A stretch of 61,000 nt of DNA, counting the filler, from Hausera hauseri (taxonomy: Eukaryota), in the NCBI GenBank assembly GCA_046269625.1. It is 8 parts of 8 records of this genome, joined end to end, with 100 filler letters (N's around TTAATTAATTAA, not from the genome) between each part and the next. Parts side by side here need not be neighbours in the genome. Positions count along the whole stretch, not along the records: positions 45,483 to 55,967 come from JBJURY010178861.1; 7 more parts are not named here. One strand, given 5' to 3'. A program made the translations under genes and the position numbers. Each line of letters begins with the position of its first letter. The first letter of the stretch is position 1. The notes under the pieces are model-generated. The model was given only the letters and a program-made list of their open reading frames with translations, was not told the DNA's origin and did not search any database. This document shows positions 45,483 to 55,967 of the stretch, in pieces.

Positions 45483-46247
45483 TGGCGATCCCTGGCCAGT
45501 TACCTAGAAAAAAAAATGCCGAAAAAGCAGTTAACGCCTAAAATAGGCAATACAAAATTAAGCCTACCAGGAATTCTACGTTAACTTTTCTTTTTGAAGC
45601 AAATTAACCCTGATCATTGAATTTTATATCATCAAAATTTTATTCTCCATAACTGCTAGGGGACTTCTAAAAGGATTTTATCTTTATTTTTAAAATATCT
45701 TATTCATATATTTATAAATATTTATGAAATAACGAAATTTTACTAATCCTAAATTCAAGCAATTATACTTAAGTTATGGAGAATCTATCTAGTTTGAACC
45801 AATAATTCTTGATGAAAAAACAATTTGATTATTATGGTTACTCACGATGATGATCGTTCGGATGACTACCGTATTTTCTTTGTATTGGAAGTTTTTTTTT
45901 TTAAATTCATAAATATTCCTTCATTAACCATGAGCCATCATTATTCACGTTATTTACATATCAATTAATAATAATTATTTTAATTAAAATTTTTTTAATC
46001 AACATAAAAAAAGAAAAAAAGAGATTTAGCAACATATCAAGGATACTTATAATAAATATAATAAATATAATAATAAATAATATTTATAAATGAACATAAT
46101 AAAATAATAATAAATAACAATTATAAACCTTCTCTTAGAATTCTTATGTTCGACCAAAGAGACCATCAATACTTTATCCAAGGCCAGTCGTGTTTTTGAG
46201 AGCGGAGGTGGAGACATATAATTGTCTGACCCAGGCTGACCATCACA
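45483..46247 (-). repeat. 3' LTR of the intact Gypsy element (truncated by the spacer)
   Basis: Begins TGTGATGG at 46247, directly after the PPT. 45483-45955 closely matches 55493-55967. Confidence 0.9.
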
Positions 46248-46260
46248 CTCCTCCCCACCC
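46248..46260 (-). promoter_or_regulatory. Polypurine tract
   Basis: Minus-strand GGGTGGGGAGGAG immediately before the LTR TG. Confidence 0.85.
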
Positions 46261-46344
46261 GTCGTAACCCGACGGAAAAGGTCTCCATGCACAGCAAGCC
46301 GAGTCGGAACAATTCTACCTATTTACAAAAAACAACAAAAAAAA

Positions 46345-48042
46345 CTACTGTCTCCACATCTCCCAAAGGTACTGGTCGATTTCGCCAGGTGCGGGGGCAT
46401 AATTGAAAGCTGCCATATAACCCCTTACTTGGGCCGCCGCGAGATCCATTTCTCTGTGGATGTTCGCACGGATCATGGCGGATGCCATACCGGGAGGTGG
46501 TAAGCGTGGCATCCCCCTTAAAGGTGGCATCCCATGAGGAACCGGTGATAGTTGGGGACCACGGATCATTCCCCTACGCCATGGGTATGTTGAAAACCCC
46601 GGAGACCCACTATCAACTTCCATCCTCCGTGGGTTCCAATAAGGGCGTACCGCTCGAGATCCCGGTCCTCTCACGTTGGGACGACCCCTTTGATTCCTTT
46701 CTCGCCCCATCGGCTGCATAGGCGAAGCTGAAGTCGGCGGAACACAGTCCAGTCCCAGACGAGATTGCAACGATGAAGGGCGAGCCCCGGCAAATCGGAC
46801 CCTTTGTGTCGCTCTGCCCCGCAAAGCGGGTGACGTGCTATTCACCCCCAGTCGGTCCTGAAGAGATGAGGGGCGAGGACCACTAGGCCGAGCAGTTGGA
46901 GCAGCTTCGGCCGATGAGACAGGAGTCTCACAGGACATCCCCAGTCTCTCGTGTACCTTACGACCCTGACCCGATGTTGGAAGTTTCCCAGTGGCCACTA
47001 CCGGACGAGGAATCTTCTTGGTTCCCCTCCGTGTAATCTTCCCCTTGGTTCTGGAGAGGGAAGCCCCACTTGACGGAATGTTCACACCCGATGGTCCGGG
47101 GAGTGAAACATCCGCCTCCGGTTCGTCGATTGGGGCTGTGGCACTGGTACTAGCCGATGTCGACGACTCCGACTTCGGACTAGCTTTAGCACTAGGGTAT
47201 ATTATCCTAGATTTGATTGGTGCTTTGGTCTTGGGTATCACAGGCTTTGGTTTGACCCCACGGGTTTTGTTCTTAAAACCAGTGGGGGAGTCGGACAAAC
47301 GTCTCCTTAAATAAAGCCAGAAAGAACGGCAGGTTCTTCCGGTCGGATGTACTCCGTCCGATAGATAACCTCCCTCGCCTATGGTTTGACAACCACCGGC
47401 GAGGAAGCCATCCATCCGATGACGTTGAGGACGGAGTCTCCCAATAACCTGTGCGCCCAACAACTTTTCATATTCGCTTATAGACCCCGTAAACAGTTCT
47501 GACTGTGGGTCTATAATTTCTAGGTATCTCTTGATTGTTGCTAAGTAGAGCTTTGATGGTTCAAATGCCGGGTCCTCACGATATTTTCGTCTTATTGACT
47601 CCGGTGCATCTCTAACCATAAGCTCGTTCTTATACACTAAGTCAAGAGGTGGAGGTAGAAAAAGGAAAACCTTAGCTTGCGGAGCTATTAATTTGACTCT
47701 TGACTTAAAGGTGTAATAATGATGGATGAAGGTGTCAAGATGAAAGTCAGGATTGGGAATTATGGCGAAATAACTTCGTTTGTCATCGGGGCCGCTAAGG
47801 TTGAATTTCTTGAAGGCTTCCGTGATTAGCGTGAATAACACTACATGAGTAGTGTCTTCAGCCAAATCCCCCGGGAGGTAAGTAATAAGTTGCGTCAAGC
47901 GAGCTCCCGGGTAAGAAGCAAACTCAACTTTGGCCTCCGGAATTCCCAAATCCTTAACATTGAATGTTTTCTCAAGGGTTGTTACCCAAGAGTGTCCCAC
48001 AATCAAAAGCTGGAACAGATAATAATAATAGAAATCAGGCAT
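46345..48042 (-). CDS. ORF3: SGNH/GDSL-hydrolase-like domain plus long basic, disordered R/G/P-rich tail
   Basis: LLIVGHSW (block I), SYPGARL (block II), HVVLF, KVFLFLPPP, YLSDGVHPT (block V). The C-terminal ~300 aa are low-complexity with SSLQ.RLG repeats. No TM segment. Confidence 0.75.
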   Translation of the reverse strand: MPDFYYYYLFQLLIVGHSWVTTLEKTFNVKDLGIPEAKVEFASYPGARLTQLITYLPGDLAEDTTHVVLFTLITEAFKKFNLSGPDDKRSYFAIIPNPDFHLDTFIHHYYTFKSRVKLIAPQAKVFLFLPPPLDLVYKNELMVRDAPESIRRKYREDPAFEPSKLYLATIKRYLEIIDPQSELFTGSISEYEKLLGAQVIGRLRPQRHRMDGFLAGGCQTIGEGGYLSDGVHPTGRTCRSFWLYLRRRLSDSPTGFKNKTRGVKPKPVIPKTKAPIKSRIIYPSAKASPKSESSTSASTSATAPIDEPEADVSLPGPSGVNIPSSGASLSRTKGKITRRGTKKIPRPVVATGKLPTSGQGRKVHERLGMSCETPVSSAEAAPTARPSGPRPSSLQDRLGVNSTSPALRGRATQRVRFAGARPSSLQSRLGLDCVPPTSASPMQPMGRERNQRGRPNVRGPGSRAVRPYWNPRRMEVDSGSPGFSTYPWRRGMIRGPQLSPVPHGMPPLRGMPRLPPPGMASAMIRANIHREMDLAAAQVRGYMAAFNYAPAPGEIDQYLWEMWRQ

Positions 48043-48101
48043 GGTTTCTTAAGACATTCATCTTGACTATTTCACTATAATTCAATTTCCTTTGTTCCCA
48101 G

Positions 48102-51100
48102 TTAACTCCGCCGTTTCCGCTCGAGGATGTGAGTTTGAACATTAGGCAAATCCACACACGACCCTCGAGAACGTGTGAAAGGGCGAAGTTCCGCAGCAAC
48201 GTCCCTATCATTTTCATTTGAATTATTGAAATTTACATTGAGATTTTCCTCTAATAAATCAAAAGTGATACCGTCACTTGGAGGATCTACATCATTATTT
48301 AGAGAAGTCTCCAAAACAATATTGTTGGTCTCTCCATCACTAGGGAATCCCTCAAATTCCCATTCCTCTTCACTCGCATCGGTGAAACCTTCAAAATCCC
48401 ACTCCAAGGAAATAGAAGACTCTGTATCTGAATCTATGGATATGGACTGTAAGTCTACTAACTCCAAGAAACTGACTTTCTTTGTCTTTGATGAGCCTTT
48501 CCCAGACGAAAGAATGGAAGGGAAGGTGATATTATATTTCCGTAAGAAGGATGGGAGATCAGGGGAACCCCCCGATGTGGGCGTTACTGGAATCTTGCTG
48601 CTTGTACTTGAAGTGTTAAACAATGAACAAGATTTTTGGGGGCTAGTTACATCTATTGCGACAGCAGTTAACTGACTAGCAGTGCGCAATATGTTTTGAA
48701 TTTTTACAAGAGTTGCCCGTGTTTCCTCGTCTAGCGAAAAACCTTCAAAATCATCCTCATCTGGTTCAATCGACGGAGTGATATTACGAATAATGTGTTC
48801 TTCGTCGATACCTTGAACTTCCGATGGCGATGATGTAGGACTGGTTACTTCAGGAACCTCTCGCATAGCCTGAAAGTTGAATTCTTCATGTTCCTGCAAG
48901 TACTTTGGAGGAACCTGCCAACGTTTTATCTGGCTATGATGCACCCGATAAACGCGATGGTCCTGGAGCGATTTAACTTCATAAGTGACTTTATTTGGGT
49001 TTGTAGACAAGACCTTCATGGGACCCAAGTAACGTGGTTGTAACTTGTTAGTAACTAAGTCACCAGGAAGTTGACGCTTTAAACCCACTAAATCCCCAGC
49101 TTTAAAAGCGGTGAACAAAGGATGTCCAGGCTTCCAGAACGAGTCCATGTTCTGAACTGGAAGTCCAAAGAATGCCTTGTGGGCTTTTTCCATTATGCTC
49201 TCACACGGAGTTAATAATGTTTGAGCATGTTGCGTGTGATTGTAAGTAACCAGAATATGAGGTAGTTTGGTATCCCAGTTTGAACTGGTTGCCAACGATA
49301 CGCGCAAATATTGAAGCAATGTTCGATTCACACGTTCGACGATACCATTAGACGATGGTTTATAAGGAGTAGTAACTACATGTTTAATATTATATTTATC
49401 TAATAAATTTTGGAATTCACTTCCTGTGAACTCTTTACCATTGTCAGTGAGCATTCGCTCAGGTAGTTTAGGTAATGCAGGTAGTATGTAACGTTGTAAT
49501 GCTAACGCTACCGTGGCAGATTGTTTATTCCTTAAGGGAACTGCCGATACCCATTTAGAAAAATGGTCCACGAAGACCAATAAGTACTTATTACCCAAAC
49601 TAGACACTGGCAACTGCATTAAATCTACTGCAGTAAGTTCGAATGGACAATATGTAACTATTTTGAACATGGGAGGAACTATTAGCAAATTGGATAATTT
49701 GGATGACTGGCACACATGACAGGTTGTTGGAACATCATTACAAATTTTATACAATGACGGATTCCAAATATGCCTATCCAATAATGCTATCAATTTATTC
49801 CTACCCAAGTGTGCGTATTCTAAATGGCACTTAACCACCACATCTACGGCGAAGGAGAAAGGTACTACAGAAGGTACATAACCCTTTGACGTAACTTTAC
49901 TCAATGTATCATTGTAAAGTTTGTAGTCCTTTTTGAAACGCAAAAAGGATTTCATTTCCCCGTTAATATGACCAGTAATTCTGATGGGGTTTTGTAGAAA
50001 TTTAATTAGTCTGCTTATTGATTTATCGGACGATTGCGCATATCGGATTGTATCTTCCGATAGTAGGGATCCTTCAAAAGGAATTTCCTCCTCCTCTAAT
50101 TCCTCTACTCGAATGCACATCATTTCAATCACCTCAGATGCCGATTTTGATAAATCCTCCCCACCAGACTCAACTAACTCATCAATTAAAAGGTTAGGTA
50201 CGTTCCCTAATAAAGACGACTGTTCTTCCAGTGATTCATCAAGAAGATTAAAAGAAACAAAATTCCCTTCAATCTCCTGATGTAAATGTGGTTCCTGTGT
50301 TGATAAAACCTCGGAGTCTGGTGTGGTTCCTAGCAATAAATTATAATGTATACCCCCTAAACATAATAATCTGCAAAGTTTCCCACTTGTGGTTGGGCCG
50401 AATCTTAACGGTTCTCCATTGCCATAGTAAACCCAAACACGAGTTTGGTATAAAGTCGCAAAAGCTTCGATGGCTTCAGTAATAGGCATTTGACCTACTT
50501 GTTTCATCAACTGAAGTAGTTTGGTTATTCCAACATGATTTTTACCATTCAAGATGCCATATTTCTGTCTGTGGGTTATCAATTCTTGAATCACTTCTTC
50601 TCGTAGTTGTGGATGTTTATCCATGCTTCCGAATCTCCACAATGATAAGCACATAAACAGTGAGTCACCCCCTCCTGGAACCTTATGTTCAAGACAACCT
50701 GGAGGAAGTTCCATTTCTACCGGTGAAGAAAGCGTCTCGTTCGCTGACACAGGAGATCTAGATAGAGCATCGGCGACTATATTTTGTCGGCCCGGAATAT
50801 ACCGAAGCTCATAATCTATGTCATTAATCTCCTCCAGTGTCCGAGCGACCCTCTGATTTACGAGAGACATGCTGTTCAGAAACGTAAGTGGCTTATGGTC
50901 GGTGTGAATAACGACCTTAATGCCATACAAGAATGGTTTAAGTGATTTGACAGCCCACCGAATAGCTGCGACTTCTTTTTCAGTGGTGCTATATTTAACC
51001 TCAGCTTTTGACCATGTTGTGGAAATATAAGCAATTGGTTTGAGTTCTCCTTGCTGTTCCTGAGCTAGACAAGCTCCTGATCCGACATTGGAGGCATCCA

Positions 51101-53201
51101 CGAACAACATGAGCGGTGGAGCGTCAAGTTGTCGATTTGGATAAACTAACAAGGTGGGATTTATTAATTCCTTCTTCAGTTGTTCAAAGGCTATCTGGCA
51201 CTCTTGAGTCCAACTTAGGGTCCGTTTTCCCAGAATCTCAAACAATGGCTTGGCTATTTCCGAACACCGCGGTATATGCCGTCGGTAAAAATTTACCATT
51301 CCCAAAAATTGTCTAACCTTCCTAACAGTAGTAGGTATAGGGAATTCTTTAATTCCTTCAATACTTTTCTGTAATGGGATCATTCCCCGTTCCGAAACAA
51401 TGTGACCTAAATACTGAACCTCTTTCCTTAGCAAGAAGGTTTTACTTGGCTTTATTTTAAAACCTGTATTCGAGAAAGCAATCAATACCTTTTCTAGGCT
51501 CCCCAGATGCTCCTCGAAAGTCTTGCTAATAATAAGGACGTCGTCAAGGTAAACCATGACTTCCGTCCAGGGGATATGAGACAAAGCATATCTCATCCCC
51601 CGCTGAAAAGTGGCCGGTCCATTTTTCACCCCAAAGGGCATTCTCAAAAATTCCCAATGGGATAAAGGAGTGGTGAAGGCTGTCAGCTCAATGCTGTCCT
51701 CTTCCATTTCAACTTGGTAATAACCTTTGACTAGGTCCAGGGTAGAAAAATATTTTACCCCCTGCAAGCTGAAAAGCATGTCTATGAGATTGGGGATAGG
51801 GAAGCTATCTCCCTTGGTGATCTTGTTTAATTCCCTATAGTCGATACACAATCTCATAGAACCATCCTTCTTCTTAATTGGAACTACAGGAGCGGAGTAT
51901 GGGGATTTACTCCGTCTTATGATCCCTTCCGACTCCAACTTTTTGCAACTCTCCTCCACATCGCGCAAAATCGGGCCCTGCAGCCTTCGAACTGGTAACT
52001 GCACGGGGTCGTCCTGGATAATTTCAATTCGATGCTTGATGACGGAGGTACAACCTACATCACCATCGTGCAAGCTTAAGGCATTCGGATATTTCATCAA
52101 CAGAGTGCGCAACTGATCTCTCTGATCCTCTGTGATATCCGAATCCTCTAACCGAAATTCTGAAGTTAATTTATCGGCAGTCCATCCTGCTTGTTTACCA
52201 TTCTCGGGAGTCTCCGTCAACTCCACGACATTCAAAAGTGCATCCTCCGCTTCCAGGAATTCAATCTGCCCAATCTTCTGACCTCTCTTAATTTTCAAAT
52301 ATCCTGGACTCTCGTTATAAGCCAGGATAAATGCCCGATCTTCCCGAATCTGCACAATTCCAGAGGGGGAGATAAATTTGCAATTTGTGTCGCTAGAAAA
52401 TATAGGGATTTCTGTGGAATTACTTATTTTATTATTAGGGACTTCTATTTCTACTATTTTTCCCGAGTAGGGACCTAACAAAAGAGATTCAGCTAAGGAA
52501 CATTCAATATCCGACTTACTCTCGCGCCTAGTATCCCACGCTACAGTCTGGACTTTTTTCCCTGTGCGTTTCACTAATTCGCGTTCCCGCAAATCGGGTA
52601 ACAGATGTTCCCTGCTTAAAATATCAAAACCCATAATAACATCGTGATGAGTTAACTCATCCGGTATTATTATAAAGGTATGAGAGTCTAAAATGTAAGA
52701 TTCGGAAAAACGCAGTTTTAAATCTACCGCCCCTATAATAGGGTATTTTATTCTTCCTATCCCACTAATACTCACATACATTGTGGGTTTGACGGGAAAC
52801 ACATGACTATTTAACCGTTCATAACAACGGTGAGTCATCAAGCTCACGGTAGCGCCTGTATCTACAAAAGCAACGAATGATGTGCTTGGTTGATCAAGTA
52901 CATGAACATTGATCAACAACGCGTCTGTCGAAAGTGTCGAGAGTCCCAACTCAATATTAGGTTGGTCCATCGTTTCATCCGATTCGCCTGCATCAATGAC
53001 ATCCGCATCCGCAAAATTTGGCGGCGGTGCTACCGGTTTATCTTGAAAAATATCAAGATCTTCCGCTGTTATAACGGGATCCATGCTTAACAAGTCATGG
53101 ATTATAGGAATCCTTTCTTCTGATGAAGATGATGTAGATACATCATTCACCTCTTTTTCCTCTGAGTTGAGGTCTTCTAACTCAGAAGTATTCAGTTTCC
53201 C
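48102..53201 (-). CDS. pol: Pol: protease, dUTPase-like, RT, RNase H, OTU-like insert, integrase with GPY/F-like motif, acidic tail
   Basis: FVDTGA; RLCIDYRELN, LDLVKGYYQ, MPFG, YLDD; VDAS, YSTTEKE, TDHKPL, ADALSR; H..H..C..C, VDL, TDNG, NGIVER; PRYLGPM. The frame stays open upstream of the GTG to the slippery site. Confidence 0.96.
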   Translation of the reverse strand, partial: GKLNTSELEDLNSEEKEVNDVSTSSSSEERIPIIHDLLSMDPVITAEDLDIFQDKPVAPPPNFADADVIDAGESDETMDQPNIELGLSTLSTDALLINVHVLDQPSTSFVAFVDTGATVSLMTHRCYERLNSHVFPVKPTMYVSISGIGRIKYPIIGAVDLKLRFSESYILDSHTFIIIPDELTHHDVIMGFDILSREHLLPDLRERELVKRTGKKVQTVAWDTRRESKSDIECSLAESLLLGPYSGKIVEIEVPNNKISNSTEIPIFSSDTNCKFISPSGIVQIREDRAFILAYNESPGYLKIKRGQKIGQIEFLEAEDALLNVVELTETPENGKQAGWTADKLTSEFRLEDSDITEDQRDQLRTLLMKYPNALSLHDGDVGCTSVIKHRIEIIQDDPVQLPVRRLQGPILRDVEESCKKLESEGIIRRSKSPYSAPVVPIKKKDGSMRLCIDYRELNKITKGDSFPIPNLIDMLFSLQGVKYFSTLDLVKGYYQVEMEEDSIELTAFTTPLSHWEFLRMPFGVKNGPATFQRGMRYALSHIPWTEVMVYLDDVLIISKTFEEHLGSLEKVLIAFSNTGFKIKPSKTFLLRKEVQYLGHIVSERGMIPLQKSIEGIKEFPIPTTVRKVRQFLGMVNFYRRHIPRCSEIAKPLFEILGKRTLSWTQECQIAFEQLKKELINPTLLVYPNRQLDAPPLMLFVDASNVGSGACLAQEQQGELKPIAYISTTWSKAEVKYSTTEKEVAAIRWAVKSLKPFLYGIKVVIHTDHKPLTFLNSMSLVNQRVARTLEEINDIDYELRYIPGRQNIVADALSRSPVSANETLSSPVEMELPPGCLEHKVPGGGDSLFMCLSLWRFGSMDKHPQLREEVIQELITHRQKYGILNGKNHVGITKLLQLMKQVGQMPITEAIEAFATLYQTRVWVYYGNGEPLRFGPTTSGKLCRLLCLGGIHYNLLLGTTPDSEVLSTQEPHLHQEIEGNFVSFNLLDESLEEQSSLLGNVPNLLIDELVESGGEDLSKSASEVIEMMCIRVEELEEEEIPFEGSLLSEDTIRYAQSSDKSISRLIKFLQNPIRITGHINGEMKSFLRFKKDYKLYNDTLSKVTSKGYVPSVVPFSFAVDVVVKCHLEYAHLGRNKLIALLDRHIWNPSLYKICNDVPTTCHVCQSSKLSNLLIVPPMFKIVTYCPFELTAVDLMQLPVSSLGNKYLLVFVDHFSKWVSAVPLRNKQSATVALALQRYILPALPKLPERMLTDNGKEFTGSEFQNLLDKYNIKHVVTTPYKPSSNGIVERVNRTLLQYLRVSLATSSNWDTKLPHILVTYNHTQHAQTLLTPCESIMEKAHKAFFGLPVQNMDSFWKPGHPLFTAFKAGDLVGLKRQLPGDLVTNKLQPRYLGPMKVLSTNPNKVTYEVKSLQDHRVYRVHHSQIKRWQVPPKYLQEHEEFNFQAMREVPEVTSPTSSPSEVQGIDEEHIIRNITPSIEPDEDDFEGFSLDEETRATLVKIQNILRTASQLTAVAIDVTSPQKSCSLFNTSSTSSKIPVTPTSGGSPDLPSFLRKYNITFPSILSSGKGSSKTKKVSFLELVDLQSISIDSDTESSISLEWDFEGFTDASEEEWEFEGFPSDGETNNIVLETSLNNDVDPPSDGITFDLLEENLNVNFNNSNENDRDVAAELRPFTRSRGSCVDLPNVQTHILERKRRS
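53149..53201 (-). promoter_or_regulatory. -1 programmed ribosomal frameshift signal (G GGA AAC plus hairpin/pseudoknot)
   Basis: Heptamer at 53201-53195 just before the gag TGA, then a 6-nt spacer and the stem CTTCTGAGTT/AACTCAGAGG. Loop ACCTC can pair with downstream GAGGT. Pol is in the -1 frame. Confidence 0.85.
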
Positions 53202-54991
53202 TGACGCTTATCGCAATCCATCCCAAAATGCGCTCCACTACAGAAAGGGCACTTGGGTTCTTCGGGTTGTCTCGTAGGACAATCCGGAGCAAAATGTCCT
53301 TGCTCCTTACAAATCATGCATTTTCGCTGAGCAACATAACAGTCAGCATGCACATGTCCACGTTTGCCGCAAAATTGGCACAAGGGTCGTTGACGACATT
53401 GCCCCATATGGTGGCCCTTCTTCTTACAGAAGTTACATTTCTGTGGCGACTGTCCTGAACTCCTTGGTGGCGAATAAGGTGGCCTCGAAGATCTCTTCGG
53501 GGATTCACCTTGAGGCTTCGGGCTCGAAGGGGTATTCCTCTTCGGGCTTTTTGGGGCCTGCTGCTTATTAGCACTATTATTATTCTTTTTCTTATTATTA
53601 ATGGTTTGTTTTGGAGACTTAGGAGGAGACGGTGGAGCAGTCGTCCTCCTATAACTTGAATTATAATAAGTATTACTACTTTTTGGTTTTGCTCCACGCG
53701 CAACATCTGCATAAGAAGGAGCATGGCTAATGCGCTCTGGCATGGGCACTTGTTCCCTCGACCTGGGGGCGGGCATTCCCTGGCTAAGTGTAGCCTGGTA
53801 TGCCTCGGGTGGCTGAGCAGCTGATGGGTACTGTTGACCCCATCGATGTTGGCAACTGCAGTATAATGGCATGCTGCCAACGGCTGGCATCACCGTTGTT
53901 AAATCGATTACGTCGGGAGGCTGATACGGTCCCGAAGCCACATTCGAATTTGCCGTATATGGCATATTGGCGTCAACAAGGGAGATAAACTGGTCCCAAG
54001 TCATACGCACACCCATGGTCTTTTCATAGTTCCTACGTGCGTTTTCCACGTGGAACCGAATCTGTGGGGGAACACTTGCCAAGAATCTTTGCCGGACGAG
54101 GGGAAGATTCTCTACGTCACATCCTGGCAAAGCCCTTTGGGCTAATCCCAGCAAACGAATCGCGAAAACGGAGATGGGTTCATCCCGATGTCGCGTCGCG
54201 TCTAGGAAACGAATGGAGTGAGCCTCCTCCTCCCGATCCAATTCTTCGCGAGCCCATTGAAGTAGACGTTCCTTCATTTCTTCATATGAGGTGACCGAAC
54301 GTAAAGCCACCTGATATATTTGGAGAATTGGCCCCTCAAGATGTTGCCTCAGCAGCTGGAGTAGACCAACAGTATCCACTCCAGAATACGTGTCTCTGCA
54401 GAACGTCTCAAACCTTTGGAGAAACTGGTACACAGTTTCCCCGCTGTCCGGAGCATAGGTGCCCAATGGCTGGGGTCGTCTTTTTGGATTTACCGTCAGA
54501 CCCTGAATCAAATCAGCCATCTTCTGCATTAACATCTGATTCTGCTGGAACAACTCATGCACTAGATTTTGCATATCCTGACCAGCATTCACTTGAGGAT
54601 TTCCTTGAAAAGTCTGAAATGAAGGTGCGGCTGCATTAGCCATTAATAAATTGTTAGTCCCTGGCGTTTGTACGTTAGTTGTATTAGTGGTAATAGTTGT
54701 CATAGGCAAATTAAAAGATGGGAACGGGTGTGAAATCGAATAAGGGTACAGAGACGGTGCTGCGGCGGGAACGGAACTAGACGGGTTCGTCTGTGACCAA
54801 GTCATCTGTGGTACTGTTGATGTCCCCACCCCTGGCGTCAAAGTCATAAAAGTCTGTCCACTGGTCGAGTACATAGGCTCGGCCAGTGTAGTGAGAGTCT
54901 TATTCTCACATACTTCTCTCATACTCTGTCCATTAATGTCTGAAAATTCCACCCCATGTTCCCCACTAACAATCATCTTTTCCTCTTCCAT
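53192..54991 (-). CDS. gag: Gag, 599 aa, four zinc knuckles
   Basis: QFLQRFETFC, RHRDEPISVFAIRLLGLA; CNFCKKKGHHMGQC, CQFCGKRGHVHADC, CMICKEQGHFAPDC, CPFCSGAHFGMDC. Confidence 0.95.
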   Translation of the reverse strand: MEEEKMIVSGEHGVEFSDINGQSMREVCENKTLTTLAEPMYSTSGQTFMTLTPGVGTSTVPQMTWSQTNPSSSVPAAAPSLYPYSISHPFPSFNLPMTTITTNTTNVQTPGTNNLLMANAAAPSFQTFQGNPQVNAGQDMQNLVHELFQQNQMLMQKMADLIQGLTVNPKRRPQPLGTYAPDSGETVYQFLQRFETFCRDTYSGVDTVGLLQLLRQHLEGPILQIYQVALRSVTSYEEMKERLLQWAREELDREEEAHSIRFLDATRHRDEPISVFAIRLLGLAQRALPGCDVENLPLVRQRFLASVPPQIRFHVENARRNYEKTMGVRMTWDQFISLVDANMPYTANSNVASGPYQPPDVIDLTTVMPAVGSMPLYCSCQHRWGQQYPSAAQPPEAYQATLSQGMPAPRSREQVPMPERISHAPSYADVARGAKPKSSNTYYNSSYRRTTAPPSPPKSPKQTINNKKKNNNSANKQQAPKSPKRNTPSSPKPQGESPKRSSRPPYSPPRSSGQSPQKCNFCKKKGHHMGQCRQRPLCQFCGKRGHVHADCYVAQRKCMICKEQGHFAPDCPTRQPEEPKCPFCSGAHFGMDCDKRQGN

Positions 54992-55117
54992 ACTTCCCTG
55001 TAATTGATTCTACAGATAGAAAAGCGAAGAACAGAAAATAGAAAGCAGTGATACGGTGATTAATGAGCTTCAAGCTCTTTAGTTGTGCAAGTGCACCGGT
55101 AGCGAGCAGAAAACTAC

Positions 55118-55129
55118 GCTCTGCTACCA
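55118..55129 (-). promoter_or_regulatory. Primer binding site, tRNA-iMet type
   Basis: Minus-strand TGGTAGCAGAG(C), complementary to the animal initiator Met tRNA 3' end, a few nt after the LTR end CCATAATA. Confidence 0.85.
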
Positions 55130-55133
55130 ATTA

Positions 55134-55967
55134 TATTATGGTAGTGTAGAAGTAGGGCGAGAGGAAAAGGGCCCAGAGTTTCCCCCCACATGCAAATTAG
55201 TTGGTTAGTAATTTTTTCCCTCTTCTGCTACAGGTCAAATATAATGACTGTCAGTCACTACCTAATGAGGAGGTTTCTACTCTACTTTTTCGCTCACCCG
55301 TCACAACATGTAATCACTGGCAATGAGTCCTGGTACTGTGGTCACGGCAAACCAGTCCAGTTCCTGAAAAAAAAGAAACTTTATACAAAATGTACCTTCA
55401 TTTCGGCAACTTTTCAATTTGTATAGTACTTAACTGGCAAGACTTCAGGTGTCTGCTTGTCAAAAATAAGGCGAACTCGTCCAAATTTGAGAATGGAGAT
55501 CCCTGGCCAGTTACCTAAAAAAAAATACCGAAAAGGTGGCAATTAACGCCTAAAATAGGCAATACAAAATTAAGCCTACCAGGGACTCTACGTTAACTTT
55601 CCTTTTTTTTTTTAAAAGCAAATTAACCCTGATCATTGAATTTTATAATATCTTCAAAAATTTTATTCTCCATAACTGCTATGGGACTTCTAAAAAAAAG
55701 GATTTTATCTTTATTTTTAAAATATCTTATATATTTATAAATATGAAATAACGAAATTTTACTAATCCTAAATTCAAGCAATTTTACTTAAGTTATGGAG
55801 AATCTATCTAGTTTGAACCAATAATTCTTGATGAAAAGACAATTTGATTATTATGGTTACTCACGATGATGATCGTTCGGATGACTACCGTATTTTCTTT
55901 GTATTGGAATTTTTTTTTAAAAGTTCATAAATATTCCTTCACATGAGCCATCATTATTCACGTTATT
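55134..55967 (-). repeat. 5' LTR (truncated by the spacer); full LTR inferred at ~1.1 kb
   Basis: Direct repeat of 45483-45955. Ends CCATAATA, an imperfect inverted repeat of TGTGATGG, next to the PBS. Confidence 0.88.

Follow-up and report, generated by a model that had tools for sequence, protein, structure and literature searches.

OTU domains are already known from mobile elements and viruses, OTU proteins with serine in place of the catalytic cysteine are known from flies, and accessory enzymes are known from invertebrate long terminal repeat (LTR) elements. Ginger1 DNA transposons carry OTU or Ulp1 domains fused to gypsy-like integrases (PMC2836005), Helentrons also carry OTU or Ulp1 domains (PMC6431247), and LTR retrotransposons of bdelloid rotifers possess an accessory dUTPase, a GDSL esterase encoded in a third open reading frame (ORF3) and a DEDDy exonuclease (PMC5408684). 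Here we describe an OTU-like domain within the Pol protein of a Ty3/gypsy-type LTR retrotransposon from Hausera hauseri (assembly GCA_046269625.1). The element fills the piece taken from record JBJURY010178861.1, which forms positions 45483-55967 of the 61,000-nucleotide stretch that was analysed as a whole (hereafter the window), and its Pol holds the domain (pol residues 816-941, window 50328-50705, minus strand) between RNase H and integrase, with serine at the position of the OTU catalytic cysteine. Our literature search found no OTU domain in the Pol of an LTR retrotransposon, a description elsewhere, for example in Repbase Reports, being possible, and no serine-type OTU family of the size reported below.

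An OTU-fold domain between RNase H and integrase

The earlier note on this DNA had claimed a catalytically altered OTU deubiquitinase (DUB)-like domain inserted in Pol right after RNase H. The motifs it quoted are all present in an open frame of 1,682 residues on the minus strand (window 48102-53150), and the domain does lie within that open frame (ORF list); translated on the plus strand, 50335-50690 is interrupted by many stop codons. ADALSR occupies Pol residues 793-798, KVPGGGDS 823-830 and IHYNLL 934-939, and the span from KVPGGG to IHYNLL corresponds to window 50334-50684. The claimed placement stands in that the domain lies between RNase H (Pfam range 647-775) and the integrase zinc domain (1099-1151), but 'right after' was too strict, the domain starting about 25 residues past the end of RNase H. 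The whole interval from RNase H to integrase measures about 300 residues and consists of the compact domain at 816-941 and an acidic linker at 942-1095.

Taken as a single sequence, the domain is borderline: Pfam OTU (PF02338), the comparison that had been proposed as a check, returned E 0.083 and 13.8 bits, short of its threshold of 23.3, and the PDB match to OTUD3 had E 0.015. The lone sequence thus stays under the Pfam threshold, whereas the family profile and the fold both returned OTU. Relatives were collected by a full HMMER scan of 1.84 billion representative proteins (clusters at 50% identity, E ≤ 0.001), and the matches to the domain included two canonical DGNCLF OTU proteins, P0033 (6.9e-10) and P0111 (2.4e-6), which are clear members of Pfam OTU (88.6 and 58.6 bits, respectively). 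A profile built from the window domain and 31 short relatives (alignment A1, 32 sequences) matched OTUD3 (1.2e-9), OTUD5 (1.1e-6) and OTU1/OTUD2 (approximately 4e-4) in the PDB and no other fold, apart from RNase H ends owed to the flanks. In these profile alignments GGGDS-L-F stands opposite GDGNC-L-F, and H-F/Y-N stands opposite H-Y-D in OTUD3 and H-Y-N in OTUD5.

The predicted structure agrees with this assignment. An AlphaFold2 model computed with the A1 alignment reached pLDDT 88.7 and pTM 0.81, and a Foldseek search of the PDB gave 52 matches at E ≤ 0.001, all of them OTU domains among the matches listed, with OTUD3 best (E 6.3e-9, TM 0.70/0.78). VIA-align likewise gave Z 18.1 to OTUD3 over 135 of 141 residues, 16.8 to DUBA and 14-15 to nairovirus OTUs, and a language-model atlas places the domain segment next to OTU clusters (score 0.91). 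Ser830 (residue 30 of the model) begins helix 30-40, and strand 135-141 starts with His935, so that the two residues stand where OTU enzymes have their nucleophile and base. We conclude that Pol 816-941 is a true homologue of OTU deubiquitinases in both descent and fold, as the earlier note had supposed.

Serine at the nucleophile position across the family

The codon of Ser830, TCA (50661-50663, minus strand), is identified as the catalytic cysteine position by sequence, by the OTUD3 alignment and by its place in the model helix, and it is two base changes away from any cysteine codon. The codons of His935-Tyr936-Asn937 (50340-50348, minus strand) correspond to the catalytic histidine and the third triad residue of OTU enzymes, being aligned with HYD of OTUD3 and HYN of OTUD5. 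Family alignments thus bear out the proposal that serine replaces the catalytic cysteine while the histidine is retained, and they add the asparagine two residues on. Among the aligned domains of the representative search, the nucleophile column holds serine in 114, alanine in 8, threonine in 8 and cysteine in 5, the last figure including two canonical outgroup OTUs, so that three cysteine rows fall within the retroelement family. The residue immediately before the nucleophile is aspartate in 108 and asparagine in 30, and the three positions before that are almost always glycine. Three residues before the nucleophile, where canonical OTUs have the aspartate of D-x-x-C, the window Pol has Gly827 and the family has glycine in 133 of 139 filled cells; the aspartate is not kept. 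Histidine fills its column in 136 of 144 filled cells, and two residues on there is asparagine in 126 and aspartate in 7. The active-site loop of the family has therefore changed from D-G-N-C to G-G-[D/N]-S, with the histidine and Asn/Asp (H-x-N) kept, and the only A1 columns conserved at 90% or more are G26, G27, S30, R50, Y64, H135 and N137.

The earlier note had named as one refuting case a copy that was a point mutant of a cysteine-type enzyme. Because the relatives themselves carry serine (107 of 131 aligned domains, ~82%, the others including 8 with alanine, 8 with threonine and 5 with cysteine, two of these being the outgroup OTUs), we regard this as a serine lineage and not a mutated copy, and P0001, a Pol 47% identical overall, has the same GGGDS and GIHYN. 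Judged from the aligned domains, serine is the state of the whole retroelement family. The same conclusion was approached through a quick maximum-likelihood tree of the 131 domains from which the serine column was left out; we use it for coarse statements only, because its columns are few for the number of rows and it is rooted on just two long outgroup rows. In this tree the retroelement domains are united in a single clade (SH-aLRT 99) that excludes the two canonical OTUs, and the three cysteine rows (P0058, P0060 and P0063, all GGGDC) are nested inside serine-dominated crown clades. Alanine rows are mostly scattered, 7 changes being needed for 8 rows, and one lineage is fixed for alanine (GGGDA...HYN), with full-length Pols of 1752-1764 residues in several samples and with His and Asn kept. 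A further clade of seven rows (P0047, P0081, P0134, P0117, P0039, P0077 and P0080; SH-aLRT 100) lacks the triad: T, A or M replaces the nucleophile, S, T or Y replaces the asparagine, and in six of the seven rows C or Y replaces the histidine. This clade still keeps the OTU-like domain in Pols of about 1,700 residues.

The family is large, and the place of the domain in Pol is nearly constant. The domain is carried by 189 cluster representatives at E ≤ 1e-3, and 44 of 151 representatives are at least 1,400 residues long, with Pols of 1,400-2,500 residues. The motif that ends RNase H (..LSR) lies 12-41 residues before the nucleophile (median 34) in 100 of the 104 representatives with enough upstream sequence. 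In the seven full-length or long partial Pols that were checked, Pfam finds reverse transcriptase and RNase H on the N-terminal side of the domain and integrase on its C-terminal side; in the partial sequence P0007 only RNase H precedes it. Pfam reports no OTU in the family Pols checked, and PF02338 reaches E ≤ 0.01 in only 5 of the 32 A1 members (best 0.0016); since the Pfam model misses most members, the domain goes unannotated. Named sources are the bdelloid rotifer Rotaria socialis (P0007) and one Armadillidium vulgare assembly, flagged there as possible contamination, and the remaining relatives come mostly from metagenome or ENA contigs. A metagenome contig considered as a related locus (L001, Ga0074193_1000797) was rejected as a chance hit, having a single 8-residue word match and no related ORF.

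Many relatives also have a second retropepsin (D-T/S-G-A) downstream of the OTU-like domain, which Pfam recognizes as gag-asp_proteas, RVP or Asp_protease in P0014, P0027 and P0058. Its motif occurs in 53 of the 83 representatives with at least 250 residues after the histidine, usually 60-95 and in a few cases up to 160 residues past it, giving the order protease (PR), reverse transcriptase (RT), RNase H (RH), OTU, second protease (PR2) and integrase (IN). The motif is present in 53 of 63 crown-clade rows and in none of 19 basal-grade rows, the grade to which the window element belongs.

Sequence conservation points to constraint on the domain. Compared with P0001, the OTU-like domain is 56% identical without a gap and the integrase core 61%, whereas the N-terminal and protease segment (pol 1-200) reaches 38% and the linker downstream of the domain 27%; by these identities the OTU-like domain evolves like a working domain of Pol. 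The source run yielded 122 contigs on pol at 85-100% identity, and the element family is therefore multicopy in the source; among runs recorded as RNA, none contains the stretch. The 40 best supported contig differences on pol comprise 31 synonymous and 9 non-synonymous changes, and one of them, a synonymous change, falls inside the OTU-like domain.

Possible docking or catalysis by the domain

The earlier note had offered two functional options, a ubiquitin-binding pseudo-DUB or a serine enzyme, and both are live hypotheses. The interpretation that we place first, at about an even chance of being right, is that the domain is a non-catalytic pseudo-DUB that docks ubiquitin or a ubiquitin-like protein (UBL). 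The retained cleft would hold the C-terminal tail of ubiquitin or a UBL, and after Pol processing the domain would probably stay with or near integrase. It might thereby tie integrase or the pre-integration complex to ubiquitin-marked proteins of the host or the element, and such a tie could shield them from degradation or direct integration. The domain would not be a thiol isopeptidase; its core function would be non-covalent recognition, with at most slow hydrolysis of the ester type. Ubiquitin-type signalling around integrase or the integration site is suggested as the target because the domain adjoins integrase and because OTU and Ulp1 domains recur in Ginger1 and Helentrons. Several observations favour binding: the alanine-fixed lineage retains His and Asn within full-length Pols, the triad-less clade retains the domain, and the aspartate three residues before the cysteine of canonical OTUs is glycine in the family. 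In addition, the Drosophila serine-type OTUs Otu and CG3251 showed no DUB activity in vitro, even when their Ser had been reverted to Cys (PMC4654579).

We caution that other observations weigh against a purely docking domain. Each of the three triad positions is one of the seven best conserved A1 columns, serine has been kept in ~82% of lineages though Ala or Gly should suit a mere binder, and all three triad residues were lost together in the triad-less clade, the pattern expected of a catalytic unit. Moreover, the variable loop has G-Q-[L/M]-P instead of the W/F-G-G with which canonical OTUs touch the ubiquitin tail, and for this reason the ligand may not be ubiquitin at all.

An alternative interpretation, tentative but serious, is that the domain is a real Ser-His-Asn hydrolase of the OTU fold and that catalysis is its predicted selected function. 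His935 and Asn937 would activate Ser830, or the histidine would activate a water molecule, and the substrates would be conjugates of ubiquitin or UBLs with integrase, Gag or host factors, most plausibly those joined by labile ester or thioester bonds. The conservation just described recommends it: all of S, H and N belong to the seven columns at 90% conservation or above, the remodelled loop G-G-G-[D/N]-S hardly varies, serine is preferred over the equally small Ala or Gly, variants at the serine position are mostly scattered tips of the tree (the 7 changes for 8 alanine rows), and in one clade the triad was lost as a unit. We know of no serine-nucleophile enzyme in the papain-like clan, however, and the third residue is usually Asn and not Asp (126 of ~143 filled cells), which is weak for activating a serine hydroxyl. 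Alanine-fixed and triad-less lineages also still resemble intact multicopy elements. The Drosophila serine-type OTUs showed no activity towards ubiquitin chains, NEDD8-AMC, SUMO2-AMC and peptide substrates (PMC4654579), while ubiquitin esterase activity has been found to be independent of the cysteine, surviving Cys-to-Ala but not Cys-to-Thr, and to be present in the pseudo-DUBs OTULINL and OTUD6B (bioRxiv 10.64898/2026.10.20.760496). Cysteine-independent esterase activity would also explain the alanine lineage that keeps His and Asn. In its fullest form, which we consider less likely than not, this alternative would give the OTU/papain-like clan its first natural non-thiol hydrolase. The enzyme, a Ser-His-Asn (or water-activating) esterase or isopeptidase acting on ubiquitin or UBLs, would have a GDS-like nucleophile loop and be distributed among gypsy-like retrotransposons of invertebrates; in the crown clade it would form, with the second retropepsin directly downstream, a ubiquitin-directed protease module analogous to DDI1.

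The domain might instead be a polyprotein-processing protease that cuts Pol in cis or in trans near the RNase H-integrase junction, as tymovirus and arterivirus OTU-like proteases do in replicase polyproteins, but we consider this improbable. Pol has to be cleaved at the junction where the domain lies, and there are known viral OTU-type proteases that combine polyprotein processing with deubiquitination (PMC3744425, PMC3968130). The second retropepsin downstream of the domain in the crown clade also shows that proteolysis has been elaborated at the RNase H-integrase junction. However, the element already has a retropepsin, many relatives have two, and the nucleophile is Ser or Ala; a conserved Gly-Gly-like cleavage motif was not seen beside the domain, no search aimed at one having been made.

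Less credible still is a functionless relic, a fragment of a host OTU gene captured once and carried neutrally. One clade has indeed lost the triad, but 189 clusters, no two of which share as much as 50% identity, hold the domain at one and the same location. Seven of its columns reach 90% conservation or more, and in the comparison with P0001, whose Pol is 47% identical overall, the domain aligns ungapped at 56% identity, double the figure for the adjoining linker.

The remaining pair of explanations, that the window copy is a point mutant of an active cysteine-type OTU or that the domain is an SGNH/GDSL esterase and not an OTU, can draw on the three members with GGGDC and on the G-D-S-L string in the loop, but we reject both because serine occurs in 107 of 131 domains and in P0001, the cysteine rows sit in serine clades, the codon is TCA, and the domain has the OTU fold instead of the flavodoxin-like alpha/beta/alpha fold (blocks I, II, III and V) of SGNH hydrolases, none of which appears among the listed structural matches (Foldseek, VIA-align).

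A large, old family that holds the domain at a fixed place by integrase suggests that retroelement integration or stability is tied in a general way to the ubiquitin system of the host. With serine kept in more than a hundred lineages, and with its natural Ala, Cys, Thr and triad-less variants, the family forms a mutational series that bears on the long-standing question of whether serine-type OTUs are binders or enzymes, such as ubiquitin esterases. The crown clade is unusual also in its PR-RT-RH-OTU-PR2-IN architecture.

The element and its closest known counterparts

A single full-length LTR retrotransposon of the Ty3/gypsy type, about 10.4 kb long and on the minus strand, makes up the JBJURY010178861.1 piece; all features below belong to it, and its two LTRs enclose three open frames, gag, pol and ORF3 (ORF list, LTR alignment). 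Direct repeats and pairwise alignment place the 5' LTR (~474 nucleotides) at 55494-55967, its outer end being the piece edge, and the 3' LTR (~472 nucleotides) at 45483-45954, also ending at the piece edge; a target-site duplication cannot be seen because the piece is cut exactly at the LTR ends. The LTRs are 94-96% identical in gapless blocks and 90% identical as a mean over columns when indels are counted. They are thus about 4-6% apart in gapless blocks, with several indels in A/T runs, and all three ORFs are still open. No clear primer-binding site or polypurine tract could be assigned from the pairwise alignment of the LTR ends, and no tRNA gene is present.

The gag frame (53192-54991) encodes 599 amino acids with several CCHC zinc knuckles near the C-terminus, for which Pfam zf-CCHC gives a weak match (E 0.0086) and the translation itself shows four C-x2-C-x4-H-x4-C motifs. 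Its end reads G GGA AAC TGA (53192-53207), so that a canonical -1 slippery heptamer, GGGAAAC (53195-53201), stands in the gag frame directly 5' of the stop codon. The pol frame, -1 relative to gag, is open from about 53207 across the heptamer, which is a candidate -1 frameshift site into pol.

Within Pol, the ORF, its translation and Pfam give the order protease, reverse transcriptase, RNase H, OTU-like domain, acidic linker, integrase and long C-terminal tail. Apart from the OTU-like domain, the order PR-RT-RNase H-IN, together with a gypsy-type RNase H and an H2C2 integrase, is of the Ty3/gypsy type (RVT_1 2e-33, RT_RNaseH 2.9e-28, rve 8.3e-17 and Integrase_H2C2 8.2e-08), and in the profile comparison with the PDB the RNase H end is matched by the Ty3 Gag-Pol structure 7q5b. 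The retropepsin-type protease (pol 78-182, window 52605-52919) is placed by weak Pfam matches (gag-asp_proteas, Asp_protease and Asp_protease_2, all under their own cut-offs) and by a DTGAT motif, with DTGA at residue 97. Reverse transcriptase and RNase H extend over pol 425-798 (50757-51878), ending in ADALSR, with RVT_1 at 425-585. One contig of the source run, in the reverse transcriptase region (51616-51906, minus strand), has 36 differences in 291 nucleotides; the 18 of them checked at 51714-51876 are all synonymous, 17 at third codon positions, and the contig represents a diverged subfamily under purifying selection in the same genome. Downstream of the OTU-like domain, the acidic and poorly conserved linker (pol 942-1095, 49866-50327) has no Pfam match, and the window element has no second protease. 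Integrase follows at pol 1099-1393 (48972-49856), with the H2C2 zinc domain, the DDE core (rve, 1168-1265) and an SH3-like C-terminal domain (1352-1393).

ORF3 (565 amino acids, 46345-48042) occupies the position of an env gene and has no Pfam match and no PDB sequence match. Its C-terminal half is rich in Pro, Ser and Arg and of low complexity, and its N-terminal ~260 residues contain G-H-S and D-G-V-H-P motifs in the translation. Language-model features alone place ORF3 near Lipase_GDSL clusters (score 0.93), the other near clusters being from annelids and molluscs. The N-terminal part may, as a lead only, be GDSL/SGNH-lipase-like, GDSL-type ORF3s being known from bdelloid LTR elements (PMC5408684).

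In its accessory enzymes this element resembles those of bdelloid rotifers, which are likewise invertebrate gypsy-like elements that capture extra enzymes; one relative (P0007) is from Rotaria socialis, and the possible GDSL-like ORF3 is a further likeness. No OTU domain is reported from the bdelloid elements, however (PMC5408684), and the window Pol has no dUTPase by Pfam. Ginger1 and Helentrons, compared here by description only, are alike in carrying an OTU in a mobile element and, for Ginger1, in its fusion to a gypsy-like integrase. They differ in being DNA transposons whose OTU lies C-terminal to integrase or within Rep/Hel and is a pfam02338 cysteine protease, whereas here the element is an LTR retrotransposon and the OTU is of the serine type and N-terminal to integrase. 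The nairovirus L protein, arterivirus PLP2 and tymovirus PRO share with the window Pol an OTU fold inside a replication polyprotein (Z 14-15 for the nairovirus domains), but they belong to RNA viruses, have a cysteine nucleophile and shown DUB, deISGylase or processing activity, and are only 10-16% identical to the window domain.

Among cellular OTUs (PF02338, MEROPS C85), OTUD3, OTUD5/DUBA and OTUD1 share the fold (Z 16.6-18.1, TM ~0.7), the nucleophile position at the N-terminus of the central helix followed by L-F, and the conserved L-R motif of helix 2, and the H-Y-N of OTUD5 is identical to that of the window domain. Their Cys is Ser here, their Asp three residues before it is Gly, the residue before the nucleophile is Asp/Asn here, and the W/F-G-G of their variable loop is G-Q-L/M-P; the window domain is furthermore embedded in a retrotransposon Pol and falls below the Pfam OTU threshold. 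OTULINL/FAM105A is alike in having an OTU fold without the catalytic cysteine and a weak ubiquitin esterase activity (bioRxiv 10.64898/2026.10.20.760496), but it is a host protein with Asp at the cysteine position and no specific sequence relation to the window domain. The Drosophila proteins Otu and CG3251, of the OTUD4 subfamily, share a natural Cys-to-Ser change with the histidine retained, and they raise the same question of enzyme or pseudo-enzyme (PMC4654579). They are host genes that keep the Asp three residues before the nucleophile (D-x-x-S), where the loop here reads G-G-D-S (PMC4654579), and in that one subfamily the Cys-to-Ser change arose several times, whereas here serine is ancestral to a whole retroelement family.

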